Shown: positions 1 through 22,662 of the stretch, one piece after another
How the letters are laid out: every line of letters starts with the position of its first letter
Numbering within the stretch: the stretch's first letter is position 1
Source: Lepidodermella squamata
Taxonomy: Eukaryota > Animalia > Gastrotricha
Direction: 5' to 3'
Length of the DNA stretch: 22,759 nt
NCBI GenBank assembly: GCA_047495785.1
Contig: JBLDXI010000150.1
Location: 1-22,759 of the forward strand
The notes under the pieces: generated by a model
What the model was told of the DNA's origin: nothing
What the model saw: only the letters and a program-made list of their open reading frames with translations
The model's database searches: none
Translations under genes and position numbers: made by a program

Positions 1-1115
1 CAAGCAGTGAGACTTTGGATGCCGTTTTAGGACCCCCTTCTATCTTTTTCTAATAATCGAACAGTTTTCAATAAAAGTTGGCAGGTATGTATTCTCCTAC
101 CTATCTATACTCCCAATAATCGAAGAAATAACGAAGAAGTTGAACGACGCGTTTTAGGAGGCCATTTACCTGAAAAACGGGGTAATTTTTGACACTTTTG
201 GACGGTACAGAGATAAATAAGTGAGAAAAGGTAGGAAACTCGTGCATGAGCTAGTTCCGATATTCGGCGTCAGCTGTGGCCAATCGTTAAGAAAGAAATT
301 TAGGAGCAAATAATGCTGTTTTTCAATTTTCCATGTCCGAAAACACGTTTTGTCCAAAGTTACTCCTCGTTACGGTATTGATTTTTCGAATTTTGTTTAA
401 ATTTAGTGACCCAGTTTAATTCCAACTGTCAAATGACGATTATCTTGAATACAACCTTGTTATTTTATCCGGATAAATTCAAGAAGGATTTGAAGGTGTA
501 GCAGGTTATTTCAGATGTCGGCATTGATACCATCCGATTACGCGTGAAATTCTGCGTGTTCCTTGACCATGAAACCCAACAACACTCCACCGGTTTTGTT
601 CATTGATTATAGGAAAAATTTCGCACATTATTTTGTCTCAAAATGCGAATTTATAATATGAGACACTCCGCCAGAAAACAGCCCAACTTTTCACAGTTAT
701 TAGAGAACTTCACCACGAAGCAACCAAGGTATTAATTGTTTGGAAATATCGGTTTTCATCTCATAAGACAAAGGATTTTTTTCTGAAAATAAGTATCGAC
801 ATTAACAGTATCTTAAAGTATCCAGAAAATAAAATTTAAAAACTAAAAATAAAATACAAATAAAATTTGGGCTGTCTCATATTATAACGACGCAACTTAA
901 CGGAGGGGTTTGATGGCCCTCTTTTACGCAGCCTGGTTCCGCTTGCTTTGTCGCGATTGCTGATACTGACTACAAGAAATGCATTACCTCAAACCGGACT
1001 TCTTAGCTCTGTTTGCACCGAACTGCAACCTAGCAAGCGGTCGACGTCCAAGATAAACTACGCTTGGAGTATAATAGTACATCATTCCATTTCTCCAAGG
1101 AACTATGCCCCACCT

Positions 1116-1145
1116 TTGTCCCAATTTTGTCCCAAGTTGTCCCAA
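1116..1145. repeat. Three tandem copies of TTGTCCCAA
   Basis: Exact copies at 1116-1124, 1127-1135, 1137-1145. Confidence 0.8.
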
Positions 1146-1363
1146 TCGCAGCGTTATTAAACAATACCTATTATATGCACATAGTCTATAGCAAAATATC
1201 GTTGCCCATATCCAGGGATTTGTTTGCTTAATCTCATAATTAGATCGCCAGTTTTTTTCGGGTTAAATCACTTGGCATTTTGTTTACACTGTCAACCCAG
1301 TGCGTCAAGCTGCAGAGGATTCAAAGCATATTTATCCTGCTGTAAATAATTTCCTGTTAAAAA

Positions 1364-1735
1364 ATGGTTAAATCAATTCTGATCGTCTTTCTTGCCTTGT
1401 CGATTGTTGTTGGTAGCTTGAATGGCCTGACTTGCTACAAAGGCGAGGTGTCGTCGATGACGAGCTCATCGATTTCGATCAATCCGAGAGACCACGGCGA
1501 CCAGATTAAGCTGGAAAGTGGCTGTACCTCCTGCTCACGAACAATGAGCTCTACTACGTATCCACATCCATATTCGTCAATTGGATACGATTGTGAAAGT
1601 GACACGAGCGCATGTGGCGAAAAGATCATGGTCAACGTAATGGGGGCACCCGAAAATACGACACAATTTAGTTGCCAATGCTGCTCCGACAAGTGCAACG
1701 GCGAGGCTGGATGTCGCGTTAAATTTTGCCTCTAG
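1364..1735 (+). CDS. Small secreted cysteine-rich protein, Ly6/uPAR (three-finger/LU-domain)-like, 123 aa
   Basis: ATG in AAAAATG context; hydrophobic signal peptide MVKSILIVFLALSIVVGSLNG; mature start LTCY and C-terminal CQCCSDKCN match the LxCY...CCxxDxCN LU pattern; 11 Cys in mature part; AATAAA at 1859-1864. Confidence 0.7.
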   Translation: MVKSILIVFLALSIVVGSLNGLTCYKGEVSSMTSSSISINPRDHGDQIKLESGCTSCSRTMSSTTYPHPYSSIGYDCESDTSACGEKIMVNVMGAPENTTQFSCQCCSDKCNGEAGCRVKFCL

Positions 1736-2358
1736 TATTTCCACAGGCATCGCAACTCCCAGGTCATTCGCCGTTATTAAGTTGGACGATATCAGCTTAT
1801 GCTCTAGCATTGAACACTAATCCAACTCAACCGGTAATTGTAAATACCGCTGTAGAATAATAAAGTTTCCCCGTGAAAATTTCGAGTACATTTGGAGTTT
1901 TCTGCGATGTTACAGTGTTTCCTACAGTTTTTTTATTTTTTCATTCCTAATTTTGTTTGCGATCAAACAGTGGCGAAATAATATTGTCAACAAGTAAACG
2001 CGAAGGAAAAAATGTCGCGGCGCCTCACTACCGATTGCCAATGTCAAAGTCGTTAAGATAGAGATTATCGACCCTTGAACACCACAAGCTTTTAAGTAAC
2101 ACTAACTCCAACATAGTTACCTACTTCCATTCACTTTTTAGGTCACTTCAGGCTCAAACCAATCTTGGGCGGATCAAAACGGCTAAATTGAAGATCAAAA
2201 TGAAGCCTAATATTTTTATTTACTCCTTTATTTTGGAGCTTGAAAATTATCGTAAGAGGTGAATTGCGAAAATGATTTACTTGGGTACATCAAATTGCAG
2301 GCTCAAAGCTGATAATTTTAATATAGCATTGCGTTATTCAGTAAAAGAGCAACAATTC

Positions 2359-5300
2359 TTAGTTAGGGATAGCATCGATAGCAGCAATGAGCCCAGCCCA
2401 GACCTCGAGACCACTTGGGGTGATTTCAGACTCTGGCTGAACGAATCCGTTGATACTGTTCTTACCAGGGCGCAGCTCTAAGCAATAGCTGTACTTGATG
2501 CCCGCCACAGCCTTAGCCCAGTCGATCGAGCCACCAGAAGCTTCGTACAGGAGATCGACGATATTACCCGCCTTCCAGGTCTTTTTGTTAACAGCTTGAA
2601 GGGCAGCGACACCAACTTTCGCAACGCGTTCCTACGACATAGGTATCAATGAAAATGTTTTTTAACAGATTTAAAGCAAAAATCTCCTACCAGTTCGGTG
2701 TAATCAGAGGGCTTGCTGGTACCACTCTGTTTAACACCGTATGGGATCAACCAGTATTGCGAGTAGGTATGGAGAGAGAAATAAACACGGCTATTGTCCT
2801 TGTTAGCAAAGATGAAGTCGGACAGCGCCTTAGTCTCCGGCTCTGAAAAGGCTGACTTTCCACGGTAGGTATCAGAGCAAGGCTGTGAGCTGGCGCCAGA
2901 TGCTAGTATAAAGAAAAAACGAATGACACTTGCTTTTAGCTGAAACTTTCAATTACCTCCAAAGGTGTAGTTCCAGTTGCGGTTAGGATCAGCGCCAAGG
3001 CATGTTTTACTGCCGTAGTTCGAACGGGTTTTGCGCCACAAGCGCTCCTTTCGCGTGTATTCGTAGCCGTCTGGGTTTGAAACGGGGATGATGTACCAAT
3101 CGTAGGTGTCCAGCATCCGCTTAGCTTCAGGATCTTTCGAGTAAGTGTTGACCAAACGGTCGATAAGATAAACGACAGTGCCAACGGAGAGCCATTCTCT
3201 GTAATTTCAAAATACAATTAAGTTTTGGAACATTGTATTTTATAGCGGTGAGCTAAAAATATAAGTAGCAGCCTTATGAAAACCGTTTCCAGAAGTTTTC
3301 GATGATTTCCTTGACTAAGCATTAAGTGAGCCAATTCGAACTACAGTTAGGATGGCATCAATTAACACTTAGTTTAGAATAGAGTAGTTTCCTCTTTTAT
3401 ACATTTTGCGAAATTTCCTTTTCCTCTTTTGCAGTCGAATTTGGATAAAAAGAGCAGCGCAAAACGTTTTGTCTGCATGCTTGATTTTTTCGACAGTATC
3501 ATGTCTCTCAAAGTTGCTCTTCTTATAGCAATCACCGTCAAGCTCGCGAATGGTGCTAACAAGCCTTACTCACTACGACAGCTCAGCTTAACAACAATAC
3601 CAAGCGCAGATCCTAAGGTGTTTTACGCATCAGGATTGCCGTCGCAGCTAGTCTACGATAACATCAACAATCGTGATGACATTTTGCCAGGGTACCAGAT
3701 AATTCGTGACATAAGGGATGACAATTACGGTTATGCTGCTACAACTCGTTTGATAAGATTCCGCCAAGAATGGAATGGCTCAGAAGCGTATGGTGGTTAT
3801 CAATCCCCTGTTGTTATCGGGCCCCTTCTCTCCACTGGATGTCAAGCTATTGGTTCACTTCTCCCATACGTCAATAGCGTTGCTCTGTCAACGTACTGTA
3901 ATACTCCCTACCTAACTGAGCACAGTAGATATCCTAATCTATACCTTTCGATTACGACTTTCAAAACTTCAGCAGTAGCGAATCTTCGATTTATGCGCGA
4001 GGTAGGAGGCTGGAACAAATTCGCCATTATTGTAGAGTCATTCGGTGCAGTTTCAGACTTATCAATGGTTACCTATTTAAATGACAAGGCTGTGGAGAAT
4101 GGTTTCACTGTAACATGGTTGGATGTCCTAAAAAACGCGGACATTTCAATCCTCCTGAATTTGAAAGACTCTGGGGCACGAGTGATTTTCGCCATGATAT
4201 ACACGCAGTCTCTGGTCGCAGAATTTCTATGCGAGGCTTACAATATCGGAATGACGAAGCCGCGATATGTTTTCATAATTGCTAATACCCAATTCAGCTT
4301 TCTGGTCCCTCGACGGTGCACGCGGGAAATCATGGACATTCAGTGGCAGCAGGTATTTTTCTACGGCCCGATGTTTAAGCCACTTAACTACTCCAACGTT
4401 TGCGATTTGGGTTATACAGCTGCAGATTTCAGAGATAAAATGATGCGCATGTTGAACACAACTTCCGAGGATGACTTTTTATTTGCCTACACCCTTCATG
4501 ATGTTTCTTTGCGATCCGCCATGGTTCTGCACGAGTCTGAGCGACGACTACAGCGCTACTTTAACCTTACCTTGCGAGACTACCATCGCTACCCTGATCT
4601 TGTGTCAAAAGTTGTCAATCGCTCGATGCTTGAAACAAAGATTCGAGGGTTGAAAATTTCGGAAATGTCATTCAGCCCTAAAGGCCTTGGCCAGGGCGAT
4701 GTTGAATCGGTTTTTCAATGGACCCCCCAAAACGGTATGCAGCCCGTTAGCCTGATTCGATCGATCGTCAACGACAGCCTAGACGATTTCGACTACGCCA
4801 AGTACAAACTCGAAAATGTTGGAACCATAAAATGGCCGAATGGGAAGAGACCCCTTGATGGGGCAAAGGTTATCACATCCTTCCTTAGCCTAGACAGCGG
4901 AACTACTGGAACTTGCTGGGTTTTTATCATTTTAACCACGCTATTTCAAGCTGTATCTATTTTAATGATATTGTTAAGGAAACTACATCCAACAGATTAT
5001 GGGAATTCGAAAATACTAGCAACCGTTGGTTGTTTAATCATCAATTCGGCGGCAGCTTGCTTTATAACAGACAGAGGGCCAAGCTCCGGTAATACTGTTG
5101 CGGCTTCGATCTCATTACTAAGCCTAGGTGCCAGTATGGCACTCAGCACTGTGGCTTTTCGTTGGCTCGTCATTAAAAATTACATTAATAAAGCTCTATT
5201 GAAGCAGCGCAATGCGACTGGAAGTCGAGCTAATTCGAACTCGAATCTGAACAGGCTGGGTACCGTTATTTCATTTACAAGATCCTTATCGCCCTTTGGC

Positions 5301-6527
5301 ACAATATCCGATGGTCTAAACAAATTTGTTTTGACTTTCCCCACAAGTATTTGGACTGATTTTGACAAGCGAATCACGATTTCGACCGCTGTTTTCTCAG
5401 CTGGAGTCGCTATTATTGTAATAGCATGGCTGATATTGCAGGAAATAAGCTGTCAGGAAAAGCTTTTTGCTCCGCCTGTCTATTTTGAAAATGAAGACAC
5501 CTTTCTCGAATCAAGGTTCATAGACTGTGCAGTATACGGAACCTCTTCGTGGGGGCTGTTGGGCGCAATCACCGGAAGCGTTATCTTGCTGCTTTTAAGC
5601 GGTTTGATCGCAGCTTACAATTTGAAGCAGATCAAAGGGGTATCAGCTAACCTACGCGAAATTCTGTCGAGCTGGCTAGGGATTCTAGCGGGCGTGAGCC
5701 TATTTCCTGCAGCCGTGCTGATAGTTGTTGCTACAAATAGCGATCCTATCAAGCAACAGGCCGCGATAGCTTTTGTTTCAATCTTCATCTCACTTGTCAC
5801 TTCAGTTACCTGGATCTATCCTTGTTTCTACAAGGAGCGAAGACCTAAACCTTCTCTGAACGTGACACCTTCAAACAATAGACTTTCGGGGGGTTGAGAT
5901 GAAGTGTGAAACTTGAGCTATCATATTACCACGAAAAAATCTTATACAGAAGGTGATTGCATAAGAATAAAATGTATGTTAAGCTAACCTTGCATGCATG
6001 GTGCCTTCGATCCAGATTTTCTGCTTCGGGGAATCAGAGTCAGCGCCCAACTTGATCCACTTGAAGGTTCGCCCTTCAAATGACGTGCCCACATCGCCGC
6101 AGGTTGCCAATCCTGACTGCTGACTGCAAACCTCTTCAAGCCACGTGTTCAACGCGTCTACGGTAGGATAAGTCCCCACAATAGAGGCGCGGTTGTTACG
6201 GTTTTTCGCATCCTGTGCATTGACATTGTCAATCATTTCTTGAACATCACCGATCAACTGCTTGTACGGCATGTTTACGGTTTGCATCAAGTTGGTGAAC
6301 ATGGCAACTGAAGCCGCACCAACGTGAATATCAGCTGGGTTGTTGACATATGATGGCTCTTCCCAGTAGTCAAACTGATCCGACGGGGCGTCGAGGAATT
6401 GCCGCAGGATAGCTAGATGGTCCTCGGTTGCTGGGTACACCTGGAACACTTTGTCACCATTGTAGGTTTTGTCACCCGAGACAGCGGCTACAACAGCGAG
6501 AATGAGAATCAGAACTTTTGATGTCAT
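2359..6527 (-). CDS. Pro-carboxypeptidase A/B family (M14A), paralog CP1, 4 exons, ~421 aa
   Basis: Exons 6527-5989, 3198-2957, 2902-2691, 2631-2359 (1266 nt, in frame; all introns GT..AG: 2790, 54, 59 bp). Signal peptide, activation segment, HAR|E (His69/Glu72), LWRKTR (Arg127), DPNRNW (Asn144/Arg145), SLHTY (His196), LYEASGGSIDW (Tyr248, Ile255), YCLELR (Glu270), bovine CPA numbering. Confidence 0.92.
3501..5897 (+). CDS. Intronless class C GPCR, GABA-B-receptor-like (Venus flytrap domain + 7TM, no cysteine-rich domain), ~798 aa
   Basis: ORF 3429-5897; probable start ATG 3501 gives signal peptide MSLKVALLIAITVKLANGA (alternative ATG 3477). Flytrap motifs INNRDDILPGYQI, VIGP, RYPNLY, GWNKFAII, LKDSGARVIF, FLCEAY..G....YVF; stalk IKWPNGKRPLD; seven hydrophobic segments; AATAAA at 5966-5971. 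Confidence 0.85.
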   Translation: MSLKVALLIAITVKLANGANKPYSLRQLSLTTIPSADPKVFYASGLPSQLVYDNINNRDDILPGYQIIRDIRDDNYGYAATTRLIRFRQEWNGSEAYGGYQSPVVIGPLLSTGCQAIGSLLPYVNSVALSTYCNTPYLTEHSRYPNLYLSITTFKTSAVANLRFMREVGGWNKFAIIVESFGAVSDLSMVTYLNDKAVENGFTVTWLDVLKNADISILLNLKDSGARVIFAMIYTQSLVAEFLCEAYNIGMTKPRYVFIIANTQFSFLVPRRCTREIMDIQWQQVFFYGPMFKPLNYSNVCDLGYTAADFRDKMMRMLNTTSEDDFLFAYTLHDVSLRSAMVLHESERRLQRYFNLTLRDYHRYPDLVSKVVNRSMLETKIRGLKISEMSFSPKGLGQGDVESVFQWTPQNGMQPVSLIRSIVNDSLDDFDYAKYKLENVGTIKWPNGKRPLDGAKVITSFLSLDSGTTGTCWVFIILTTLFQAVSILMILLRKLHPTDYGNSKILATVGCLIINSAAACFITDRGPSSGNTVAASISLLSLGASMALSTVAFRWLVIKNYINKALLKQRNATGSRANSNSNLNRLGTVISFTRSLSPFGTISDGLNKFVLTFPTSIWTDFDKRITISTAVFSAGVAIIVIAWLILQEISCQEKLFAPPVYFENEDTFLESRFIDCAVYGTSSWGLLGAITGSVILLLLSGLIAAYNLKQIKGVSANLREILSSWLGILAGVSLFPAAVLIVVATNSDPIKQQAAIAFVSIFISLVTSVTWIYPCFYKERRPKPSLNVTPSNNRLSGG
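5966..5971 (+). promoter_or_regulatory. Probable polyadenylation signal of the nested GPCR
   Basis: AATAAA 68 nt after the stop codon and 17 nt before the host intron boundary at 5988. Confidence 0.6.
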
Positions 6528-6955: not shown

Positions 6956-8266
6956 TCAATCTGGAATAGCATCGATAGCAGCGATGAGACCAGCCCAGAC
7001 TTCGCGACCACTCGGGTCGATTTCCGAGGTGGGTTGGACAAAACCACTCATACTGCCAGAGGATGGGCGCAGTTCGAGGCAGTACGTGTATTTGATGCCA
7101 GCAACAGCTTTCGCCCAGTCTTGCGAAACTCCTGATGCTTCATACAGCAGATCAACAATTGTTCCAGTTCGCCACGTACGGCCGTTAACCGCCATCAAAG
7201 CTCTAGCCCCGGCATCAGCAACTCGTAGCTGCAGAAATCAATGACAACTAGTCAGTTCAATACCAAAATAACCTACCAATTCGTTGTAGTCGGTCGGTTT
7301 AGGTCTGAAACCCCAGGAAATCAGCCATAGCTGAGAAAAGGAATGGATTGAAAAGTAAACTCGTGTGTTGTCCTTATTAGCCAATATGAAATCAGCCAGA
7401 GCCTTGACTTCTGGCTCCGAAAACGCATTAGGACCAGCATAGGTGTCTGAGCAAGGATTGTTACTGGCCCCACTGCCACCCCACTTGTAGTCCCAATTAC
7501 GATTAGGATCCACCCCAAAACAAGTTGTTGTCTGTTTTGAGCGAGTTTTGCGCCATAGTCGCTCGCGAAGTCGGCTGAACTCGTAACCATCAGGATTTGA
7601 CAGTGGAATGATGTACCAGTCGTAGTTGTCCAACATCCTTCTAGAAACAGGATCGGTGTTATATTGATTCAATAAACGATCGATGATGTAGACAACGGTG
7701 CCAGTTGACAGCCATTCTCGAGCATGCATAGTGCCCTCAATCCAAATTTTCTGCTTCTTCACGCCCTTTTGAGCAGGCGCGCCTAGTTTAATGTATTTAA
7801 TTACACGATCTTCAGTCGATGTTCCGACATCGCCGCATTCAGCCAAACCGGGGTTTCCAATGCATAAACTTTCCAACCAACTATTAAGTTGATCGTAAGT
7901 TGGATAAGTGTTAACAATTCTGTCATTTGAATAGCTTTGAGCTTGGCTCTTAGCGTCAACCTCATCAATCAGTTCTTGAACATCCGGAACAGCGATTGAA
8001 TAAGCGATTTTTGTGACATTTAACAAATTCAAGAATTTCGGAATTGTTTTCGAATCGATTCTAATGTCCACTTTTGTGTTGATTGCAACGGGTTCGGACC
8101 AAAAGTCGTATTGGTCGGATGATTCATCTTGAAGAGACCGAATCAGCTCGAGTTGATCGACGGATGTCGGAAATAGCCGGAAAACCTGATCACCCCGATA
8201 GCTTCTCTGCTGTGCAAATGCGAAGCTTGAAAGAATACCGATAGTTAAAAATAGCTTGAAAATCAT
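6956..8266 (-). CDS. Pro-carboxypeptidase A/B family (M14A), paralog CP2, 2 exons, ~420 aa
   Basis: Exons 8266-7277 and 7228-6956; 48-bp intron GTAGGT..CTGCAG. Signal peptide, HARE, LWRKTR, DPNRNW, SIHSF, LYEASGVSQDW, YCLELR; minus-strand AATAAA at 6929-6934. Confidence 0.93.
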
Positions 8267-8423
8267 TTTTCTGCACGAGAAAATGATGAACTTTAGGGGA
8301 CTAGGAGATGGTATCTCACATTAACCCTTAGAGAGATAAGGAACGCTGTAAAAAATGGCTGCCAATTTTTATCTCGAAAATTCTCGATTATTTACTTGTT
8401 CTGCGTCATGATTAAAAAATAGA

Positions 8424-9878
8424 TCAAGCTCGATATAGCGTTCTATTCATAGCATTAACAGCCGCGGCAAGCCCGGCAAACACTTCTTTCCCACTTGGCT
8501 CAATATCGGACTCAGTGGCTCTGAAGCCTCCATTAGAACCGGCTCGAAGTTCCAAGGTATAGACGTATTTCGCCCCAGTCGCCTTTTTCGTCCAATCGTC
8601 AGAGCCGCCAGACGCTGGGCCGTAGATATCCATCGTATTTCCGCACTGCCAAGGTCTGTTGTTAACGGCGGACAGGGCCTTCGTTCCAATATTAGCGACT
8701 CGCAACATCTCGTTGTAGTCAGGGCCGTAACGTTGGTCTTCAGGGCCAGCTCCAAAGGGTACGAACCAAGTTTCCGCGTACGTATGAATCGAAAAATACG
8801 CCAGTAAATTGGCTTTGTTAGCTAGGACAAAGTTAGACCAGCTACGACTTTCAGGCTCGGAAAATGCGCGCTTGCCCTGGTAGACCTCGCTAGAAGGGTT
8901 GGTACTCGCTCCAGATCCTGCAAAAATCGTCGATGAGAAAATTTGAAATTTAGATCATGAACAATTTACCGCCAAAGTCGAAATCGAAATTGCGGTTGAG
9001 ATCAACGCCAACGTAAAGCGGGGTTCTTGAATCTTTCGATCGATTTTTTCGCCACATTCTGTCCCGTGTCTGGCTGTAGGTATATCCGTCGGGATTTAAC
9101 ATGGGTAAAATGATCCAGTTGAAATTAGAGAGAAGTTCTTTCACGGATCTTTCATTGCTGGTTACCAACTAAATTTTGAAGACAATTTAGATCTAAAGTC
9201 GAAAAATTAGGTTGATTTCAAACCTTATTGATCATGTAGATAATCGTCGCTGGGGACAACCATTCCCTGGCATGTGCGCCCCCTTCAATAATTACCGTGG
9301 GTTGGCTCCAGTTGCCTATCTAGAATGAAAATATGGTTAATAAATTTTAATTTCTCCTTCGAGACATTACATACCTGGATGTATCGTAGATCTCTTTGTT
9401 CGAAGGATTTACCAACACTGCCGCATTTTGTTGAATTTCTGTAAGATTCGCAAATCGAATCTAGCCAAGCCACAATATTGCTGTAAGTAGGGAATTTCTT
9501 CACAACCAGTGAATTGAGATCAGTGGCTTTTATGGAAGCCCTCAAAAGCCTGGGCTCATCTGCATTTTCCTGCTTTTCATTATCAATCAGTGCTTGCAGG
9601 TCGTTGATCGTAATGTTGAAGGGAATTCGTGCTTGATTAGCTTGGCGAATGAAATCTTGAACTGAACCAGCTTTCACTCGAACATCGACCCCTCGACCAG
9701 GTCTACTTGGGGCGAGCCAGAAGTCAAAGTCATCTTTATCAACGAATTGCTCCAAAAAGCTGACTTGTTGCTGAGTTTTCGGTTCGAAATGGAACACCTT
9801 CTCGCCGGTGTAGTCGTAATAGGCCAAGCTTCCGACCACAAAGAAGCAGCAAAGGAGTAGGACATTTATATAGGGCAT
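8424..9878 (-). CDS. Pro-carboxypeptidase (M14A), paralog CP3, CPB-like Asp255, 4 exons, ~430 aa (left-arm copy)
   Basis: Exons 9878-9375, 9319-9224, 9168-8970, 8917-8424 (1293 nt, in frame, GT..AG introns of 55, 55, 52 bp). Signal peptide, GAHAREW, MWRKNR, DLNRNF, SIHTY, IYGPASGGSDDW, YTLELR. Confidence 0.92.
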
Positions 9879-10780
9879 TTTCCGGTAACGATATTCTAGA
9901 CTTATTTTTTCTGCAAAGGCAGTGATAAATACAAAAAACCGCTATATAAATACGTTCAGGTCGAGCGCGTTAGAAGAAAAAACGCGCGGTTCCGTGTTAT
10001 GACGAAAAAAAGTATGAAGGATGAATAATGAGTGGGCTGTGGTAAATATCTAGCGTGTCAAGCACGAATTTACGTGGGTTCTTAACTGCGAAGAGCATGT
10101 GTGAGGGTAATCAGATATTGAGATTTTTGTCTTGTGAGCATAAATTATCCGAAAATAATTTCGGTCGACAGAGCCCTTATATGGCTAGTTTTTTTTAGTT
10201 ATAGTGCATTTTGTCTGCAGTTCGATGCTGTGTTTTACCATGCAGCGAGTACGAGCATGAGGTCAGTTACTCTGTTACCCTCACCCTTCCTGAAAATCGT
10301 GAAGTAGAAGGCGATATAGTTAGTTGCCAAGTAAGGGACCGGCAGTACTAGCGCATATTTTTAGAAATGACAGTAACGCTATATTAGTGTAGGTTACAAT
10401 TGCGGAGCGGTTGAATTCTAAATCCTAAATCACTATCTTCGGTTCAAGGGCTATAAAAATGCCATTAGCTGCTATCTTGTGTTCTCATCCATTCTTGAAC
10501 TCTTGGAGAGAAAAGAGAATTCGGTTTCTTTTTCTATCCTTCGTCAAGTATTCTGACGCTCTTCATAAATTCTGCGATCAAAGATGTGTAACGGGCAGCA
10601 AACAGGTGCCGTTTATTTATCTTTATTCTCAAGGCGCAGCAAAATACCTAATTGAAAATGGGGCAATGAAACCTTGAAAAAACTGTTCATCAGACGTCGC
10701 CAATCGCCAAGGTCGAAAATGTATACTGCTAACTGCTAAGAACATATAATCCCAATAGACTCTCACATGAATCTACAGTT

Positions 10781-13700
10781 TCAAAAACAATGTTTCTGAA
10801 AATATCTATAATAATCAATGAAATCTGCCGACTCTGTAACGCGGGCGCTTGTTGTAAGAAGAAATAGTGCCGGTTTCGCTGTCACTGCTCCAGCCTTCCG
10901 CAGACTGTAAATTGCCGGCGGATAGTTGGAAATCAGTGCCAAATCTAGTGGAGTAAAGCCATCGTCATTTCTCGCGTTGATATCCGCACCAGCCTCTATC
11001 AACCCATCAATATTACTTGTGTACCAATCGGATTCTATCATGTGCAATAGAGAATTTCCGCGTTGATATTTTCGATTGACATCATAACCCTTCTGTACGA
11101 GGAATTTTGCGAAACCGTAATCCCGATTGGTGCTTGCAACAATAGTTAGGCAGGTGTTGTTGTCTTTGTTCTGCGAATTTACATTCATACCATGAATCTC
11201 GACAAGCCATTTGGCCAGTGAGAAACTCTCAAGAGGTCCACTCATACACGCCAGTAAAAATGCATTATTGCCTTCGTAGTCGACAGCCGTCAAATTCGAG
11301 CCTTCGTCCAGTAGTAATTCAACCATTGCATGGTTATATTGACGAGCTGCGGACAAAAGCGGAGTTAGCCCAGAGGAGTCGCGTTCTTCGAGGCCAATTT
11401 TAGCTTTCCTAATCAGGAATCTTGCAAGTTCGTCATCGCTTCTGTAAACAGCTAGATGCAAGAGAGTGCCATTCGGTTGCCATCCCGAATTAACCCTAAC
11501 TCGGCCATCAGCCCCTTTTGATAACAAGTATTCGAAAACTTGGAAGCGATCCGCTGATTTCAAGTGCATCACCGCGATTGCAAATGGGGGCAATCCATCC
11601 AAATATACAGAAGTGACCGAATTTTCAGCTTCCTCAACAGCGAATTTCACCATAGGTAGAGCTGGGGTCTCAGTGGTTCGACAAGCTTCTGAAAGCATAG
11701 AGTACAGTTCATTCGTAGCTCCCTTTGACATTAGGAATTTAACGATTTCTAGACTTTTAGAAGCAGCGTATGTAATTGCCGCCCTGTCGTTGTATACCAG
11801 GTCAACGTCTGCTCCATATTTTACGAGCAATTTGACAAGATCAACACGACCCATCTCAGCTGCGAGCATTAGGGCGGATTTTCTAGCCGAGGGATGAATC
11901 GCATTCGCATCGCCATCGTTTTCGAGTAGCACTTGAAGCATTTCCAGAGAAGGATTTTCTACGAACATTGCAGCGGAAACTGCTGGGACAGGTATTAGTT
12001 CGATTCGCCCCAAACAAAGAGCGTAATAATCGTCAGGAACCATAAGAGCGGCATCACCGCGCGCTTGATTGAGACGTATCATCTCACGTACAGCAGAGAT
12101 GTTACCATCTATAACGTAGTTCACAAATTTCTGAAAAAATATGAGAGAGAACAGATGTATAAAAACGTAGATATATTGGAAAGAGAACACCGCTAAATAT
12201 TACAGCCATATTTAGGAATAAGCTGGGGGTCAAAAATTAGGTGAGCTAATTGATGATTCATCGGTTGATTTCAGAAACAAATTCGTTATTTCATTGAAAG
12301 TAAGAGCCCAATATTACCCACTTTTCTAAAATCGTGAACTTTCTCATATGATTGAGTTATCAGTTATCACCTTGCAATTCAAACTGACTCACTACACTAC
12401 GTCACGGTAACAGATATCACATCTCTACCAGCATAATAAAGAAAACTCACAGCGTTGAGCCTATCCTGATTTTGATTCCGAACAGTGCTTTTAACATATT
12501 GTGTCGTTGTCAACTTCGGAGTTGTAGTTGATCTCGCCCCCGATATAATCTCAGTGACAAGCTGCTGTAGGCCAAAATCATCGTTGGGCGTTAACGATCG
12601 GTTAGTACTTGCGGTGAAATTAAGCAGTTTCACCGTAATTGCCGAAGACATTTCTGTTGTTGAATTATGACGATAGTTCGCAGTGGTTGCTCCTAACTCT
12701 TGGGCCGAAACTGCTCTCTGCAAATCGACCTTGCTGATTGGAACAGAGAGATCCAAAGCTGTTTCGCCTTGATAATTTGTCGCATTCACATCAGCCCCCA
12801 TGTCTAGTAAGGCCAGTACTACCCGCCTTCTATTACTTGAAGAAGCAGCTGACATTAGTGGCGTATAACCATAAGGTCCGGACTTGGCGTTGATAGCATA
12901 GCCTTTACTGACCAAATATTTCAGTATGTCGACGATAACCGTGTCGTCAACCTGAATGCCACCTCGCCACTGTAGGTGATAGTCACAAGGGGTTCCATAT
13001 TTAGTCGTCTTTGATTTGGCATCATTTCCGCCTATTTCAACGGCGAATTTTATGAAGGTTAAGATACCCAATTCAGTCTTATCGATCTGACAAGCCTGAA
13101 GCAGCATGTTACTGCCTTCATTATTTTTCGCCTGTTTATGAGCTCCTTGATCAACGAGGTACTGGAGTAAAGCTAGAGAATAGCCAGTTTTAGCTGCGAT
13201 GAGTAACGGCGTGTTGCCTTCGTTATCCCTCGCATGGACATCCATTTTGAACTGTTCGATCAGCAATTTCGCAATAGGGACAGGATCAGTCGATTGCACT
13301 CGGCTGAGAAGGTGAAGAGCGGTTAAACCGTTGGAATTCGTGTCATTCGGCGATTCAAACGGCAACAAGTAGTAGACTAATCTTAAATAATCAGGGGTTA
13401 CTTCGCCATCGAAAGCAGCCATCAAAGCTGTGTTGTTTCGGCTGTCTCGGACATCAGTCACTGCATTGTACTGTTCAACAAGGAGTCTCACCAGATCCAA
13501 CCGGCCGTTTCTTGCAGCCCAGAGGTATGCGCTCCTAACTTGAGCACTTCCATCCCTCGCTTCGACGGAGGCCCCTTTTAGTAGGAGAAACTCAACCATT
13601 TCGTAGCTTTGGTTAGTCCGCACTGCGCTGACAAGCGCTGAGGATTTCGAAGTTGAATTTGCGTTAACCAGACCTGAGTTGACCATTTGGCGAACGGTTG

Positions 13701-13861
13701 GCAGTTGTCCCGAGACTACGGCTTCGTTGAAGGCCTGAATTAAGACTTTCATTGTGCATTGTGAATATGGAACACAAATTTACGCTTTCATTGCCAACAT
13801 TTTTGAAACATGTGATGGGTGCGATGAAACAAGTTAAAAAACAAATGAATATCGACTTCAT
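10781..13861 (-). CDS. Signal-peptide-bearing ankyrin-repeat protein with two ANK arrays and a Ser/Thr-rich linker, 3 exons, ~903 aa (left-arm copy)
   Basis: Exons 13861-13784, 13734-12451, 12130-10781. About 20 ankyrin repeats (e.g. GNTPLLIAAKTG, GYTPLMSAA..LLDMGADVNA, GLTPLLSAAR, GADINARNDDGFTPLDLA). Phase-0 GT..AG introns of 49 and 320 bp. Ankyrin identity is secure; joining the two large ORFs into one gene is a prediction. Confidence 0.78.
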
Positions 13862-14547
13862 AATGTTCTAAATTGATGACAATGGGAAAATAACGAATGC
13901 AGTGGTGATTGTGCCAAATGCAGGATATTTCGTTCTTTTCACCTAAATCGTGAAGCGATTACGGCTTGGGAAGATTTTTCGCTGAAAATGGCGATCCAGT
14001 CCTCATAACTTGACTGAAACACAACTATAAAAAATTCCGAATTAAGCTTCACTGTTTTTTACTTGACTGCTGTTTTCTTAAATTAAGTGAAGAATGTAAA
14101 AAACTTTCTTACAAGCTATTTTTCAGGCATTCCTAGAGCTTTAACTACGTAGATCACATCACGAAAACGTGTAGCATGACAAAGGTTGATATATGATATT
14201 ATGTGTTCATCAAAATAAAGCCTTTATTAGGCTATCGGAAAGCTAATCTGAATCCTATAGAATCCCATGAGAATGATATACCTATTGGAAAGTGACAACT
14301 TGAGACCATGGTTTCATTTGAAAAAAATTCACAGGCTACTTTTTGTTTATTCTTGTAATTGTCGAAACTGCGCAATAATTCAAGAAGTGGGAATTCTCCA
14401 AATAAAAGAAAGTTTCCGAAACAATTTGATATAAAAAATCACTTGAGGTTGGGACAGTCAATTAACTACTGTTTTTACATCAAAAGAGAAAATCCCATCC
14501 CACCATTCACAAGTTAATGAAACAGACTCCGAACAGGTTCACAGCGC

Positions 14548-15606
14548 TTACCGAATCCGCACCACTGTTAGAAAACGTACAGCGCTCGATAGTCTGAGGG
14601 CGATTGGTTCATTTTTTGCAGTCATAGCCAGCGCGACGAGCATCACGTTCATTGAAACAACGAGTAACGCCAACACCGAAACCAATATCACTAGCAAAGA
14701 GCTGCTGGACCCGACCAGAACACCGACCAGCACACCAGCAATTATAAAAATGACCAGAGTGTAGATGAACATGTAATCGTATTTCAACTCATTCATTATG
14801 GTGATCAGTCGCAGGTTTCTCGATCGTTTAGGTACAATCGTTTTGCCTAGGATTGATCGGGCCTTGAATGCTAGTAGAATTGCACGAATTAATGAGGCAA
14901 TCATGACAAATCCAGCAGCGGATACCAATCCAGTGGTCGTATTTGATGAAAGAATCGATTCAATGACCAGGCATTCCTGAACTTGGAAATTGAAGGCCAA
15001 GCTTCTATCTGTCTTGGAGTACTCTAAAGATGTGTTTCTCAAGACAGTCTCAATAGGGTGACTAAAAAGCGCTACTGCAAATAGTGTCACGGGAATTAAT
15101 ATTTGGCCGAGTAATAATGCCGCTGTGGTAAATTTCAACTTGACCACCCTTGGGTACCTTTTCACCCCTAAAATATTGTTATTGATTCTGTGAGAACTCG
15201 CCGCAATCAAGCTGGAGAATCCAAGGACAACGATAATTCCGATGGCAGAGCAATGCAACGCCACACCTTGACTTGAAATAGTATAAGGAATAGCAAAGAT
15301 TTGGCAGGCCAATACAAAGTCAGATATCAGGATTGTAGCCAACCAGTGATTGAGACGGCGCTTACGAGATGAGAAGAAGGCAACAATTGCTATACTGCCA
15401 ATTGCTGAACATCCGGAAACGTAGAAGACGATGCTGATACTAGGCGATATTAGAGGTTTTTCAATATTGACTAGAATAAGACGGTCCCTAGGAGCTTTCC
15501 CGTCATTGGTACGCCAAATGAACCTTGCGTGGTTGATTTGAGTTTTCTCGCCCTTTAAGTTTGATTTGTAGAAAGCAACTGGCTCCTGAACGCTCCTGTT
15601 GCCGTC
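14548..15606 (-). CDS. 5'-truncated class C (GABA-B-like) GPCR: end of flytrap domain, stalk and 7TM, ~352 aa of open frame
   Basis: The minus-strand frame stays open through the whole palindrome loop (DGNRSVQEPVAFYKSNLKGEKTQINHARFIWRTNDGKAPRDRLILVNIEKP). IW..DGKAPRD matches the stalk motif IKWPNGKRPLD of the other GPCR. Seven TM segments with TM3 Cys (ALHC), ECL2 Cys (QECL) and NELK before TM6. Upstream the frame hits TAA at 15609-15607, just past the junction. Confidence 0.78.
   Translation of the reverse strand, partial: DGNRSVQEPVAFYKSNLKGEKTQINHARFIWRTNDGKAPRDRLILVNIEKPLISPSISIVFYVSGCSAIGSIAIVAFFSSRKRRLNHWLATILISDFVLACQIFAIPYTISSQGVALHCSAIGIIVVLGFSSLIAASSHRINNNILGVKRYPRVVKLKFTTAALLLGQILIPVTLFAVALFSHPIETVLRNTSLEYSKTDRSLAFNFQVQECLVIESILSSNTTTGLVSAAGFVMIASLIRAILLAFKARSILGKTIVPKRSRNLRLITIMNELKYDYMFIYTLVIFIIAGVLVGVLVGSSSSLLVILVSVLALLVVSMNVMLVALAMTAKNEPIALRLSSAVRFLTVVRIR
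15485..15601. other. 117-bp unique loop of the palindrome (GPCR coding sequence on the minus strand)
   Basis: Complementarity ends at G15484/C15602 (T15485 vs G15601 mismatch). The loop translates in frame with the minus-strand GPCR. Confidence 0.93.
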
Positions 15607-16538
15607 TTATTCTAGTCAATATTGAAAAACCTCTAATATCGCCTAGTATCAGCATCGTCTTCTACGTTTCCGGATGTTCAGCAATTGGCAGTATAGCAAT
15701 TGTTGCCTTCTTCTCATCTCGTAAGCGCCGTCTCAATCACTGGTTGGCTACAATCCTGATATCTGACTTTGTATTGGCCTGCCAAATCTTTGCTATTCCT
15801 TATACTATTTCAAGTCAAGGTGTGGCGTTGCATTGCTCTGCCATCGGAATTATCGTTGTCCTTGGATTCTCCAGCTTGATTGCGGCGAGTTCTCACAGAA
15901 TCAATAACAATATTTTAGGGGTGAAAAGGTACCCAAGGGTGGTCAAGTTGAAATTTACCACAGCGGCATTATTACTCGGCCAAATATTAATTCCCGTGAC
16001 ACTATTTGCAGTAGCGCTTTTTAGTCACCCTATTGAGACTGTCTTGAGAAACACATCTTTAGAGTACTCCAAGACAGATAGAAGCTTGGCCTTCAATTTC
16101 CAAGTTCAGGAATGCCTGGTCATTGAATCGATTCTTTCATCAAATACGACCACTGGATTGGTATCCGCTGCTGGATTTGTCATGATTGCCTCATTAATTC
16201 GTGCAATTCTACTAGCATTCAAGGCCCGATCAATCCTAGGCAAAACGATTGTACCTAAACGATCGAGAAACCTGCGACTGATCACCATAATGAATGAGTT
16301 GAAATACGATTACATGTTCATCTACACTCTGGTCATTTTTATAATTGCTGGTGTGCTGGTCGGTGTTCTGGTCGGGTCCAGCAGCTCTTTGCTAGTGATA
16401 TTGGTTTCGGTGTTGGCGTTACTCGTTGTTTCAATGAACGTGATGCTCGTCGCGCTGGCTATGACTGCAAAAAATGAACCAATCGCCCTCAGACTATCGA
16501 GCGCTGTACGTTTTCTAACAGTGGTGCGGATTCGGTAA
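15603..16538 (+). pseudogene. Mirror copy of the GPCR 7TM region with no genuine 5' end
   Basis: Identical to the minus-strand copy from RLILVNIEKP onward. The ORF-track N-terminus (TTG 15561, MICRKQLAPERSCC) is antisense loop sequence. Confidence 0.65.
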
Positions 16539-17224
16539 GCGCTGTGAACCTGTTCGGAGTCTGTTTCATTAACTTGTGAATGGTGGGATGGGATTTTCTC
16601 TTTTGATGTAAAAACAGTAGTTAATTGACTGTCCCAACCTCAAGTGATTTTTTATATCAAATTGTTTCGGAAACTTTCTTTTATTTGGAGAATTCCCACT
16701 TCTTGAATTATTGCGCAGTTTCGACAATTACAAGAATAAACAAAAAGTAGCCTGTGAATTTTTTTCAAATGAAACCATGGTCTCAAGTTGTCACTTTCCA
16801 ATAGGTATATCATTCTCATGGGATTCTATAGGATTCAGATTAGCTTTCCGATAGCCTAATAAAGGCTTTATTTTGATGAACACATAATATCATATATCAA
16901 CCTTTGTCATGCTACACGTTTTCGTGATGTGATCTACGTAGTTAAAGCTCTAGGAATGCCTGAAAAATAGCTTGTAAGAAAGTTTTTTACATTCTTCACT
17001 TAATTTAAGAAAACAGCAGTCAAGTAAAAAACAGTGAAGCTTAATTCGGAATTTTTTATAGTTGTGTTTCAGTCAAGTTATGAGGACTGGATCGCCATTT
17101 TCAGCGAAAAATCTTCCCAAGCCGTAATCGCTTCACGATTTAGGTGAAAAGAACGAAATATCCTGCATTTGGCACAATCACCACTGCATTCGTTATTTTC
17201 CCATTGTCATCAATTTAGAACATT

Positions 17225-20200
17225 ATGAAGTCGATATTCATTTGTTTTTTAACTTGTTTCATCGCACCCATCACATGTTTCAAAAATGTTGGCAATGAAA
17301 GCGTAAATTTGTGTTCCATATTCACAATGCACAATGAAAGTCTTAATTCAGGCCTTCAACGAAGCCGTAGTCTCGGGACAACTGCCAACCGTTCGCCAAA
17401 TGGTCAACTCAGGTCTGGTTAACGCAAATTCAACTTCGAAATCCTCAGCGCTTGTCAGCGCAGTGCGGACTAACCAAAGCTACGAAATGGTTGAGTTTCT
17501 CCTACTAAAAGGGGCCTCCGTCGAAGCGAGGGATGGAAGTGCTCAAGTTAGGAGCGCATACCTCTGGGCTGCAAGAAACGGCCGGTTGGATCTGGTGAGA
17601 CTCCTTGTTGAACAGTACAATGCAGTGACTGATGTCCGAGACAGCCGAAACAACACAGCTTTGATGGCTGCTTTCGATGGCGAAGTAACCCCTGATTATT
17701 TAAGATTAGTCTACTACTTGTTGCCGTTTGAATCGCCGAATGACACGAATTCCAACGGTTTAACCGCTCTTCACCTTCTCAGCCGAGTGCAATCGACTGA
17801 TCCTGTCCCTATTGCGAAATTGCTGATCGAACAGTTCAAAATGGATGTCCATGCGAGGGATAACGAAGGCAACACGCCGTTACTCATCGCAGCTAAAACT
17901 GGCTATTCTCTAGCTTTACTCCAGTACCTCGTTGATCAAGGAGCTCATAAACAGGCGAAAAATAATGAAGGCAGTAACATGCTGCTTCAGGCTTGTCAGA
18001 TCGATAAGACTGAATTGGGTATCTTAACCTTCATAAAATTCGCCGTTGAAATAGGCGGAAATGATGCCAAATCAAAGACGACTAAATATGGAACCCCTTG
18101 TGACTATCACCTACAGTGGCGAGGTGGCATTCAGGTTGACGACACGGTTATCGTCGACATACTGAAATATTTGGTCAGTAAAGGCTATGCTATCAACGCC
18201 AAGTCCGGACCTTATGGTTATACGCCACTAATGTCAGCTGCTTCTTCAAGTAATAGAAGGCGGGTAGTACTGGCCTTACTAGACATGGGGGCTGATGTGA
18301 ATGCGACAAATTATCAAGGCGAAACAGCTTTGGATCTCTCTGTTCCAATCAGCAAGGTCGATTTGCAGAGAGCAGTTTCGGCCCAAGAGTTAGGAGCAAC
18401 CACTGCGAACTATCGTCATAATTCAACAACAGAAATGTCTTCGGCAATTACGGTGAAACTGCTTAATTTCACCGCAAGTACTAACCGATCGTTAACGCCC
18501 AACGATGATTTTGGCCTACAGCAGCTTGTCACTGAGATTATATCGGGGGCGAGATCAACTACAACTCCGAAGTTGACAACGACACAATATGTTAAAAGCA
18601 CTGTTCGGAATCAAAATCAGGATAGGCTCAACGCTGTGAGTTTTCTTTATTATGCTGGTAGAGATGTGATATCTGTTACCGTGACGTAGTGTAGTGAGTC
18701 AGTTTGAATTGCAAGGTGATAACTGATAACTCAATCATATGAGAAAGTTCACGATTTTAGAAAAGTGGGTAATATTGGGCTCTTACTTTCAATGAAATAA
18801 CGAATTTGTTTCTGAAATCAACCGATGAATCATCAATTAGCTCACCTAATTTTTGACCCCCAGCTTATTCCTAAATATGGCTGTAATATTTAGCGGTGTT
18901 CTCTTTCCAATATATCTACGTTTTTATACATCTGTTCTCTCTCATATTTTTTCAGAAATTTGTGAACTACGTTATAGATGGTAACATCTCTGCTGTACGT
19001 GAGATGATACGTCTCAATCAAGCGCGCGGTGATGCCGCTCTTATGGTTCCTGACGATTATTACGCTCTTTGTTTGGGGCGAATCGAACTAATACCTGTCC
19101 CAGCAGTTTCCGCTGCAATGTTCGTAGAAAATCCTTCTCTGGAAATGCTTCAAGTGCTACTCGAAAACGATGGCGATGCGAATGCGATTCATCCCTCGGC
19201 TAGAAAATCCGCCCTAATGCTCGCAGCTGAGATGGGTCGTGTTGATCTTGTCAAATTGCTCGTAAAATATGGAGCAGACGTTGACCTGGTATACAACGAC
19301 AGGGCGGCAATTACATACGCTGCTTCTAAAAGTCTAGAAATCGTTAAATTCCTAATGTCAAAGGGAGCTACGAATGAACTGTACTCTATGCTTTCAGAAG
19401 CTTGTCGAACCACTGAGACCCCAGCTCTACCTATGGTGAAATTCGCTGTTGAGGAAGCTGAAAATTCGGTCACTTCTGTATATTTGGATGGATTGCCCCC
19501 ATTTGCAATCGCGGTGATGCACTTGAAATCAGCGGATCGCTTCCAAGTTTTCGAATACTTGTTATCAAAAGGGGCTGATGGCCGAGTTAGGGTTAATTCG
19601 GGATGGCAACCGAATGGCACTCTCTTGCATCTAGCTGTTTACAGAAGCGATGACGAACTTGCAAGATTCCTGATTAGGAAAGCTAAAATTGGCCTCGAAG
19701 AACGCGACTCCTCTGGGCTAACTCCGCTTTTGTCCGCAGCTCGTCAATATAACCATGCAATGGTTGAATTACTACTGGACGAAGGCTCGAATTTGACGGC
19801 TGTCGACTACGAAGGCAATAATGCATTTTTACTGGCGTGTATGAGTGGACCTCTTGAGAGTTTCTCACTGGCCAAATGGCTTGTCGAGATTCATGGTATG
19901 AATGTAAATTCGCAGAACAAAGACAACAACACCTGCCTAACTATTGTTGCAAGCACCAATCGGGATTACGGTTTCGCAAAATTCCTCGTACAGAAGGGTT
20001 ATGATGTCAATCGAAAATATCAACGCGGAAATTCTCTATTGCACATGATAGAATCCGATTGGTACACAAGTAATATTGATGGGTTGATAGAGGCTGGTGC
20101 GGATATCAACGCGAGAAATGACGATGGCTTTACTCCACTAGATTTGGCACTGATTTCCAACTATCCGCCGGCAATTTACAGTCTGCGGAAGGCTGGAGCA

Positions 20201-20305
20201 GTGACAGCGAAACCGGCACTATTTCTTCTTACAACAAGCGCCCGCGTTACAGAGTCGGCAGATTTCATTGATTATTATAGATATTTTCAGAAACATTGTT
20301 TTTGA
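17225..20305 (+). CDS. Mirror copy of the signal-peptide ankyrin-repeat gene
   Basis: Exons 17225-17302, 17352-18635, 18956-20305; donors GTAAAT (17303) and GTGAGT (18636); acceptors TTAATTCAG (ends 17351) and TTTTTTCAG (ends 18955); AATAAA at 20459 and 20469. May not exist in vivo if the arm is an artefact. Confidence 0.68.
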
Positions 20306-21207
20306 AACTGTAGATTCATGTGAGAGTCTATTGGGATTATATGTTCTTAGCAGTTAGCAGTATACATTTTCGACCTTGGCGATTGGCGACGTCTGATGAA
20401 CAGTTTTTTCAAGGTTTCATTGCCCCATTTTCAATTAGGTATTTTGCTGCGCCTTGAGAATAAAGATAAATAAACGGCACCTGTTTGCTGCCCGTTACAC
20501 ATCTTTGATCGCAGAATTTATGAAGAGCGTCAGAATACTTGACGAAGGATAGAAAAAGAAACCGAATTCTCTTTTCTCTCCAAGAGTTCAAGAATGGATG
20601 AGAACACAAGATAGCAGCTAATGGCATTTTTATAGCCCTTGAACCGAAGATAGTGATTTAGGATTTAGAATTCAACCGCTCCGCAATTGTAACCTACACT
20701 AATATAGCGTTACTGTCATTTCTAAAAATATGCGCTAGTACTGCCGGTCCCTTACTTGGCAACTAACTATATCGCCTTCTACTTCACGATTTTCAGGAAG
20801 GGTGAGGGTAACAGAGTAACTGACCTCATGCTCGTACTCGCTGCATGGTAAAACACAGCATCGAACTGCAGACAAAATGCACTATAACTAAAAAAAACTA
20901 GCCATATAAGGGCTCTGTCGACCGAAATTATTTTCGGATAATTTATGCTCACAAGACAAAAATCTCAATATCTGATTACCCTCACACATGCTCTTCGCAG
21001 TTAAGAACCCACGTAAATTCGTGCTTGACACGCTAGATATTTACCACAGCCCACTCATTATTCATCCTTCATACTTTTTTTCGTCATAACACGGAACCGC
21101 GCGTTTTTTCTTCTAACGCGCTCGACCTGAACGTATTTATATAGCGGTTTTTTGTATTTATCACTGCCTTTGCAGAAAAAATAAGTCTAGAATATCGTTA
21201 CCGGAAA

Positions 21208-22662
21208 ATGCCCTATATAAATGTCCTACTCCTTTGCTGCTTCTTTGTGGTCGGAAGCTTGGCCTATTACGACTACACCGGCGAGAAGGTGTTCCATTTC
21301 GAACCGAAAACTCAGCAACAAGTCAGCTTTTTGGAGCAATTCGTTGATAAAGATGACTTTGACTTCTGGCTCGCCCCAAGTAGACCTGGTCGAGGGGTCG
21401 ATGTTCGAGTGAAAGCTGGTTCAGTTCAAGATTTCATTCGCCAAGCTAATCAAGCACGAATTCCCTTCAACATTACGATCAACGACCTGCAAGCACTGAT
21501 TGATAATGAAAAGCAGGAAAATGCAGATGAGCCCAGGCTTTTGAGGGCTTCCATAAAAGCCACTGATCTCAATTCACTGGTTGTGAAGAAATTCCCTACT
21601 TACAGCAATATTGTGGCTTGGCTAGATTCGATTTGCGAATCTTACAGAAATTCAACAAAATGCGGCAGTGTTGGTAAATCCTTCGAACAAAGAGATCTAC
21701 GATACATCCAGGTATGTAATGTCTCGAAGGAGAAATTAAAATTTATTAACCATATTTTCATTCTAGATAGGCAACTGGAGCCAACCCACGGTAATTATTG
21801 AAGGGGGCGCACATGCCAGGGAATGGTTGTCCCCAGCGACGATTATCTACATGATCAATAAGGTTTGAAATCAACCTAATTTTTCGACTTTAGATCTAAA
21901 TTGTCTTCAAAATTTAGTTGGTAACCAGCAATGAAAGATCCGTGAAAGAACTTCTCTCTAATTTCAACTGGATCATTTTACCCATGTTAAATCCCGACGG
22001 ATATACCTACAGCCAGACACGGGACAGAATGTGGCGAAAAAATCGATCGAAAGATTCAAGAACCCCGCTTTACGTTGGCGTTGATCTCAACCGCAATTTC
22101 GATTTCGACTTTGGCGGTAAATTGTTCATGATCTAAATTTCAAATTTTCTCATCGACGATTTTTGCAGGATCTGGAGCGAGTACCAACCCTTCTAGCGAG
22201 GTCTACCAGGGCAAGCGCGCATTTTCCGAGCCTGAAAGTCGTAGCTGGTCTAACTTTGTCCTAGCTAACAAAGCCAATTTACTGGCGTATTTTTCGATTC
22301 ATACGTACGCGGAAACTTGGTTCGTACCCTTTGGAGCTGGCCCTGAAGACCAACGTTACGGCCCTGACTACAACGAGATGTTGCGAGTCGCTAATATTGG
22401 AACGAAGGCCCTGTCCGCCGTTAACAACAGACCTTGGCAGTGCGGAAATACGATGGATATCTACGGCCCAGCGTCTGGCGGCTCTGACGATTGGACGAAA
22501 AAGGCGACTGGGGCGAAATACGTCTATACCTTGGAACTTCGAGCCGGTTCTAATGGAGGCTTCAGAGCCACTGAGTCCGATATTGAGCCAAGTGGGAAAG
22601 AAGTGTTTGCCGGGCTTGCCGCGGCTGTTAATGCTATGAATAGAACGCTATATCGAGCTTGA
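21208..22662 (+). CDS. Mirror copy of pro-carboxypeptidase CP3
   Basis: Exons 21208-21711, 21767-21862, 21918-22116, 22169-22662; mirror of 8424-9878. TATA-like TATTTATATAG at 21134-21144. May not exist in vivo if the arm is an artefact. Confidence 0.8.

Follow-up and report, generated by a model that had tools for sequence, protein, structure and literature searches.

How does a carboxypeptidase gene come to hold a complete receptor gene in an intron that cuts its zinc-binding motif, and is that intron old or new? The question is raised by a stretch of 22,759 nucleotides (nt) from the gastrotrich Lepidodermella squamata (contig JBLDXI010000150.1 of assembly GCA_047495785.1), the whole of which is referred to here as the window. 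In gene models rebuilt from the sequence, three M14A pro-carboxypeptidase genes (CP1, CP2 and CP3) stand in tandem on its minus strand. The probable explanation of the first of them is that CP1 is an intact M14A gene with an intron that is missing in its relatives, and that this intron is filled by an independent, antisense and intronless gene for a class C G-protein-coupled receptor (GPCR), the two forming a nested pair. Functionally, the pair is a nested one of the ordinary kind; with respect to its origin, it is an unusually clean candidate for insertional intron gain.

The CP1 gene is composed of the following parts, read from its 5′ end:

CP1 exon 1: 5989..6527, minus strand; encodes the signal peptide, the M14 propeptide and the first part of the catalytic domain, as far as His-Ala-Ar(g); its last letters are AAG, followed by GT; Propep_M14 at 2e-17 and Peptidase_M14 at 1.3e-8.
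CP1 intron 1: 3199..5988, minus strand; 2790 nt, GTTAGC...TTAAT (branch-like)...TTACAG, phase 2 in Arg180 of HAREW.
CP1 exon 2: 2957..3198, minus strand; begins A|GAA TGG.
CP1 intron 2: 2903..2956, minus strand; 54 nt, phase 1, at an ancestral position (FG|A/G).
CP1 exon 3: 2691..2902, minus strand.
CP1 intron 3: 2632..2690, minus strand; 59 nt, phase 0, at an ancestral position (TEL|).
CP1 exon 4, including the stop codon: 2359..2631, minus strand.

All four exons are open, and the spliced product has 421 amino acids (aa). Exon 1 ends at 5989 with ...ATGCATGCAAG (CAT GCA AG) and exon 2 opens at 3198 with AGAATGG; the spliced protein reads ...WIEGTMHAREWLS..., as do CP2 and CP3. The interrupted motif, HAREW, is His69-x-x-Glu72 in bovine CPA numbering. 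Both Propep_M14 and Peptidase_M14 are recognized in CP1 by Pfam, and an alignment with CP2, CP3 and five animals places the equivalents of the zinc ligands His69, Glu72 and His196 and of the catalytic Glu270. Also kept are the motifs with the zinc ligands, with the arginines that bind substrate and with the catalytic glutamate (HAREW, WRKTR, NRNW, LHTYSQ, LYEASGGSIDW and LELR). Across the catalytic core the alignment of CP1 is gapless with CP2 (60% identity), CP3 (43%) and the five reference animals. The three genes differ at the specificity residue (the equivalent of 255), which is Ile in CP1 (an A-type pocket), Gln in CP2 and Asp in CP3 (B-type).

It was also considered that CP1 could be two tandem carboxypeptidase genes fused across the receptor gene. 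This was rejected: the long intron holds no carboxypeptidase-coding remnants, and CP1 is not a chimera because both of its halves are closest to CP2.

Within the long intron, and on the opposite strand, the receptor gene is laid out as follows:

GPCR upstream region: 3199..3500, plus strand; 302 nt, the presumed promoter and 5′ untranslated region; its opposite strand carries the CP1 branch-point-like TTAAT, the AT-rich tract and the AG acceptor.
Class C (GABA-B-like) GPCR open reading frame (ORF), intronless: 3501..5897, plus strand; 798 aa plus stop, with a signal peptide, a Venus-flytrap domain (ANF_receptor) and seven hydrophobic segments; an alternative ATG lies at 3477.
AATAAA: 5966..5971, plus strand; the sole AATAAA after the GPCR stop, with 17 nt (5972-5988) left to the intron edge.

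The GPCR ORF and its AATAAA thus lie wholly inside the CP1 intron, and the host remains open with canonical splice sites around its guest. The ORF takes up 2397 of the 2790 nt (85.9%), and the non-coding remainder is 302 plus 91 nt (393 nt). The structural claims of an initial annotation of this DNA were borne out by these readings. It had set an intron of 2790 bp against 48-59 bp for the other carboxypeptidase introns, had described about 86% of it as one antisense intronless GPCR coding sequence, and had placed the AATAAA 17 nt from the intron edge with no visible poly(A) remnant. It had also reported that the Arg codon of His69-x-x-Glu72 is split AG|A, and that neither CP2 nor CP3 is interrupted there. 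The rebuilt gene models and the minus-strand reading agree on each of these points. The six other carboxypeptidase introns measure 54 and 59 nt in CP1, 48 nt in CP2 and 55, 55 and 52 nt in CP3, with a GC content of 25-35%.

In the guest gene, the Venus-flytrap domain matches ANF_receptor (PF01094) at 6e-19, and the nearest solved structures are those of GABA-B R1 (1e-10). For the membrane part, no 7tm_3 match was reported by Pfam at E <= 0.01; seven hydrophobic segments occupy residues 474-772, and language-model features of the protein score 0.97 to clusters of 7tm_3 plus ANF_receptor. Among 1.84 billion representatives, 145 relatives were found at E <= 1e-3, the best at 28-29% identity, and a word-based search gave one match at 26%. 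The family is very divergent and lineage-specific. Its members on the metagenome contigs L001, L006 and L092 are single ORFs as well. On L092 (1148-5912), two ANF_receptor genes stand in tandem with a spacer of 266 nt, which shows the compactness of gene units in this family, and the non-coding part of the CP1 intron amounts to about one such spacer. The long intron is essentially one compact gene unit. On L001, the family member lies beside genes for Cys-loop receptors. A separate observation concerns L006 (203-4105), where a carboxypeptidase gene is directly followed, on its own strand and about 500 nt away, by a class C (ANF_receptor) gene that is not nested in it; a second carboxypeptidase gene is divergent from that pair. 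This proximity may be due to chance or to an older neighbourhood.

Whether CP1 can be expressed around its guest depends on the splice signals of the long intron, the ends of which are canonical GT..AG. In their make-up, its last 25 nt resemble the short-intron acceptors, TTAAT being placed ~20 nt before the AG, and its last ~60 nt are AT-rich, as in the short introns. Retention of the intron would lead to ...HARLA-stop. At the exact ends of a chance insertion, GT and AG together are expected in about 1 in 100 cases, and the CP1 junction is therefore more than chance. The terminal branch of CP1 in the family tree (0.27) is shorter than that of CP2 (0.41). The canonical ends, the acceptor-like 3′ end, the open exons and the short branch argue for a spliced, functional CP1 host.

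A number of points weigh against this reading of the pair. Both the joining of 5989 to 3198 and the transcription of the GPCR gene are predictions from sequence. The CP1 donor, GTTAGC, is suboptimal, with T at +3 and C at +6. Three AATAAA or ATTAAA hexamers stand on the CP1 strand of the GPCR gene where synonymous shuffles lead to an expectation of 2.1, a test with little power to detect selection against antisense poly(A) signals; because these hexamers show no depletion, CP1 may be prematurely polyadenylated within the GPCR region. No orthologue of CP1 or of the GPCR was found in the searched collections, and CP1 exon 1 has no match in the JGI metagenomes or among proteins of 98-313 aa. The gain of the intron is dated by paralogues only, because of this lack of orthologues in the searched collections.

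The weak donor and the antisense hexamers would also suit a different account, in which CP1 was recently broken by the insertion, is left unspliced, and has halves that merely look like exons. The loss could in that case be covered by CP2 and CP3. Such a disruption is unlikely, however, as GT and AG fall exactly at the ends, the four exons are open with their key residues kept, and the CP1 branch is the shorter one. It is more improbable still that the assembly has joined unrelated DNA at this place. The window does contain a perfect 7-kb palindrome that is itself a possible assembly artefact, but both joints of the intron are exact, canonical and in frame, and the base composition is even across them.

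If CP1 is the spliced host of a nested pair, expression of the two genes would proceed as follows. RNA polymerase would transcribe CP1 antisense through the GPCR gene. The spliceosome would then join the AAG at 5989 to the A at 3198 by means of the GT and AG, the branch-like TTAAT and the AT-rich tract, and HAREW would be restored exactly. The GPCR would be transcribed from a promoter of its own in the 302 nt that double, on the opposite strand, as the branch and acceptor region of CP1. Cleavage for poly(A) addition is expected 10-30 nt beyond an AATAAA, and the GPCR transcript would accordingly be polyadenylated at about the CP1 donor, with the expected cleavage site and the splice donor coinciding. 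The signal regions at both ends of the intron would thus be common to the two genes on opposite strands. Nested genes that are tolerated are expected to lie in opposite orientation, as the guest's signals for poly(A) addition and splicing are then not read in the sense of the host. Transcriptional interference between CP1 and the GPCR gene is possible.

The age of the intron was assessed from the positions of introns in related genes. The closest carboxypeptidase relatives found are seven genes on the metagenome contigs L002-L006 (45-66% identity). Together with the carboxypeptidases of the window they form one clade (support 100/98), in which CP1 and CP2 are sisters (99/96); the next pair, L002d and L002e (96/91), is without the CP1 long intron. 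The two paralogues in the window are:

CP2: 6956..8266 (exons 8266-7277 and 7228-6956), minus strand; 420 aa; one 48-nt intron (7229-7276) at the ancestral TEL|; HAREW uninterrupted.
CP3: 8424..9878 (exons 9878-9375, 9319-9224, 9168-8970 and 8917-8424), minus strand; B-type, 430 aa; three introns of 52-55 nt, all at ancestral positions.

The exon structures of genes from five named relatives were solved exactly against their own proteins. Ten intron positions are common to Ptychodera (a hemichordate), Owenia (an annelid) and Limulus (a chelicerate), and correspond to nt 71, 153, 290, 375, 477, 582, 690, 781, 993 and 1078 of CP1. On this ancestral grid fall the introns of CP1 at 781 and 993, that of CP2 at 993 and those of CP3 at 477, 582 and 781. 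The long intron of CP1, at nt 539, lies off the grid. In the seven metagenome relatives, HAREW and the 12 residues on either side are uninterrupted and in one frame, and HAREW is likewise without an intron in CP2 and CP3. The remaining ~19 introns in the ten genes of the clade are all ancestral; the sole non-ancestral one is the CP1 intron, which is also 50 times longer and bears a gene.

It was examined whether an ancestral intron could have slid to this place. One ancestral site is found 62 nt upstream and another 43 nt downstream, both in phase 0, and none is nearer; CP3 still has an intron at each, and CP1 has lost the two. Sliding was rejected on account of these offsets, the different phase and a protein alignment without insertion or deletion.

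An old intron, since lost from every other gene examined, is very unlikely. Intron losses are indeed rife in the clade, and CP2 retains one of the ten ancestral positions. On the other hand, the position is missing in every other member of the clade and in three slowly evolving animals from three superphyla, which have 9-11 introns each. The most economical reading of the position map is that the CP1 branch acquired the long intron later than the duplication that produced CP1 and CP2, because the position is missing in the outgroups, CP2, CP3 and the clade relatives, and because CP1 and CP2 are sisters. The suggestion in the initial annotation that the gain is specific to CP1 is upheld by the position map and the tree, with nt 539 missing among the ten shared outgroup positions, in both paralogues and in the seven relatives.

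This reading is tempered by findings in other animals. In the carboxypeptidase A2 gene of the rotifer Brachionus plicatilis, the Trp codon of HAREW is split by a phase-2 intron of 54 nt (L009:923-976), which lies exactly 6 nt downstream of where CP1 is interrupted. The same initial annotation had looked to a short intron at the very HAR|E position as a sign that the GPCR entered an old intron; the Brachionus intron, being 6 nt off, is not at that position. Five insect-like metagenome loci (L068:~930-4000 and L073-L076) have an intron of ~3 kb that precedes the His of HAREW by a few codons, which makes a third independent position around the motif. Introns have thus been acquired more than once around HAREW, since Brachionus, where the intron is short, and the insect-like loci carry positions of their own. 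HAREW was read through in 75 of the 80 loci of a second metagenome scan, a biased and weak sample in which HAREW itself was the search pattern and most contigs were transcript-like and of ~1.4 kb. As a separate matter, introns sit at three or more further non-ancestral positions in the Brachionus gene, and this suggests that its rotifer lineage has been actively gaining them.

With a gain on the CP1 branch as the starting point, it remains to be asked what the new intron was made of. One tentative answer is that a complete receptor gene was inserted into the coding exon, inside the zinc-ligand motif, and became a spliceosomal intron in one step. In this scenario, GPCR-bearing DNA (~300 nt of upstream sequence, the ORF and ~90 nt downstream) entered the exon at AAG^A, perhaps as filler in the repair of a double-strand break or as an ectopic duplicate, and could be spliced out from the outset. 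The sole non-ancestral intron among ~20 is also the sole long one and the sole one with a gene in it, and a single event explains all three. The content of the intron is the gene unit alone, with 393 nt of non-coding DNA compared to the 266 nt of the L092 spacer, and with the AATAAA so near the edge, not much of an older intron could be accommodated. AAG^A, the target, agrees with a proto-splice site, and L002c and L002e likewise have AGA as their Arg codon in HAREW. No further intron gain is seen in the ten clade genes, and a separate earlier gain would have been a second rare event. Insertional intron gain is moreover an accepted class: seven mechanisms have been reviewed, including transposon insertion and filler DNA in double-strand-break repair, the latter proposed for Daphnia (PMC3443670). 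Insertion of an entire gene would count as a variant of these two mechanisms; a full-text literature search returned no described case of it, which is weak evidence of absence.

The one-step route has costs of its own. It needs GT and AG to fall by chance at the exact ends, together with a working branch site, at ~1 in 100 to 1 in 1000 per insertion. At the intron ends (3199 and 5988) there are no terminal inverted or direct repeats and no target-site duplication beyond the AG, and the only repeats are at chance level, with no transposon ends. Neither a donor copy of the GPCR segment nor an empty CP1 site was found in the window or in the searched collections, and no copies of the intron flanks occur elsewhere in the window. 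Nested genes in the literature have been attributed to the neutral colonization of existing introns (PMC3488318). The proposal of the initial annotation that an intron was gained by insertion of the GPCR has therefore held in part: the gain is specific to the lineage, but insertion as its cause lacks an empty site, a donor copy, a target-site duplication beyond AG and transposon ends. The further idea that the guest is a retrocopy found no positive evidence, in that no A-run follows its AATAAA, a search for relatives brought up no intron-bearing parent, and its relatives on L001, L006 and L092 are also single ORFs. As the intronless state appears to be a trait of the family, it says nothing about retroposition.

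The other route has two steps, in which a short new intron (~50 nt) arose at AAG^A on the CP1 branch and was later colonized by a copy of the GPCR gene. Here the splice signals would already have been in place and an insertion in mid-intron would have been harmless. The AT-rich last ~60 nt of the long intron are like those of short introns. The 54-nt Brachionus intron just downstream and the insect-like introns upstream are further support, as they indicate a motif that repeatedly gained introns, and the route fits the usual view of how nested genes originate (PMC3488318). Against this, it calls for two rare events on one branch, the second of which must strike ~20 free nt, with no more than 17 nt surviving from the original 5′ end, and no other intron gain is seen in the clade. 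By a rough count the one-step and two-step origins are comparable, each falling somewhat short of an even chance. By either route, the gain would belong to the CP1 branch and postdate the separation of CP1 and CP2.

New introns are rare in animals, and the sequence from which one was made can almost never be identified. The CP1 locus allows a gain to be assigned to a single branch within a small gene family, and everything that the intron contains can be given a name. Should the one-step origin prove right, ordinary genes would be able to give rise to introns by inserting into exons, a new intron and a nested pair would come from the same event, and such pairs would not always depend on an intron that was there before. 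Should the two-step origin prove right, the locus would still show cleanly how an intron of recent gain was colonized at once, in a genome with 50-nt introns. With its 3.4 kb, the locus is under either origin a compact model in which to study splicing past an antisense gene.

Also in the window are a large palindrome and a few other genes:

Unnamed ORF: 1364-1735, plus strand; 123 aa, just downstream of CP1, with a signal-peptide-like start, cysteine-rich, no Pfam match.
Two intronless ankyrin-repeat genes of 469 and 451 aa: 10781-12190 and 12397-13752, minus strand; mirrored at 18896-20305 and 17334-18689, plus strand; in both arms of the palindrome.
Hydrophobic multi-pass ORF: 14548-15342, minus strand, 264 aa, and 15561-16538, plus strand, 325 aa; at the centre of the palindrome, the plus-strand copy entering the spacer and having a longer N-terminus; no Pfam match.

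The palindrome is a perfect (100%) inverted duplication of 8415-15484 and 15602-22671, with arms of at least 7070 nt and a spacer of 117 nt; 8327-8393 is also paired with 22693-22759. It contains CP3, the two ankyrin-repeat genes and the multi-pass membrane ORF, and it extends to the end of the window. A mirrored copy of CP2, CP1 and the GPCR gene may therefore lie beyond 22759. The palindrome could be real or a fold-back of the assembly.

The systems to which this locus may be compared are of several kinds. As proteins, both partners belong to familiar families. CP1 has the propeptide, the catalytic domain and all key residues of the M14A pancreatic-type carboxypeptidases (CPA/CPB), but is part of a lineage-specific expansion. 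Its guest shares a Venus-flytrap domain with the GABA-B-like class C receptors and has seven hydrophobic, putatively transmembrane segments, with no cysteine-rich linker; it differs in likewise belonging to a lineage-specific expansion, with few detectable relatives.

Among the known routes by which genes and introns arise, the guest resembles a processed retrogene in being intronless and in having the intron edge at the expected poly(A) cleavage site. It is unlike one in that there is no poly(A) remnant or target-site duplication, that 302 nt of upstream sequence are present, and that the relatives of the GPCR are all intronless, which implies no spliced parent. Insertional intron gain, by transposons or introners at AGGT proto-splice sites or by filler DNA, is matched by a new, non-ancestral position in an exon, at AAG^A, with canonical ends. 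The difference is that here there are no transposon features and no flanking repeat beyond AG, and that an entire functional gene (2.8 kb) would have been inserted, as opposed to a short element or organellar DNA.

The closest likeness in arrangement is to the nested genes of other animals, such as the opposite-strand genes in introns of NF1 and F8 and the Gart locus of Drosophila. As in those cases, a complete and independent gene lies within one intron of CP1, on the opposite strand and with no evident functional link to its host. The CP1 intron differs in being specific to its lineage and not a long intron that already existed, in a family where introns are ~50 nt long; the guest gene is its sole content, and the sequence that it cuts is a zinc-ligand motif.

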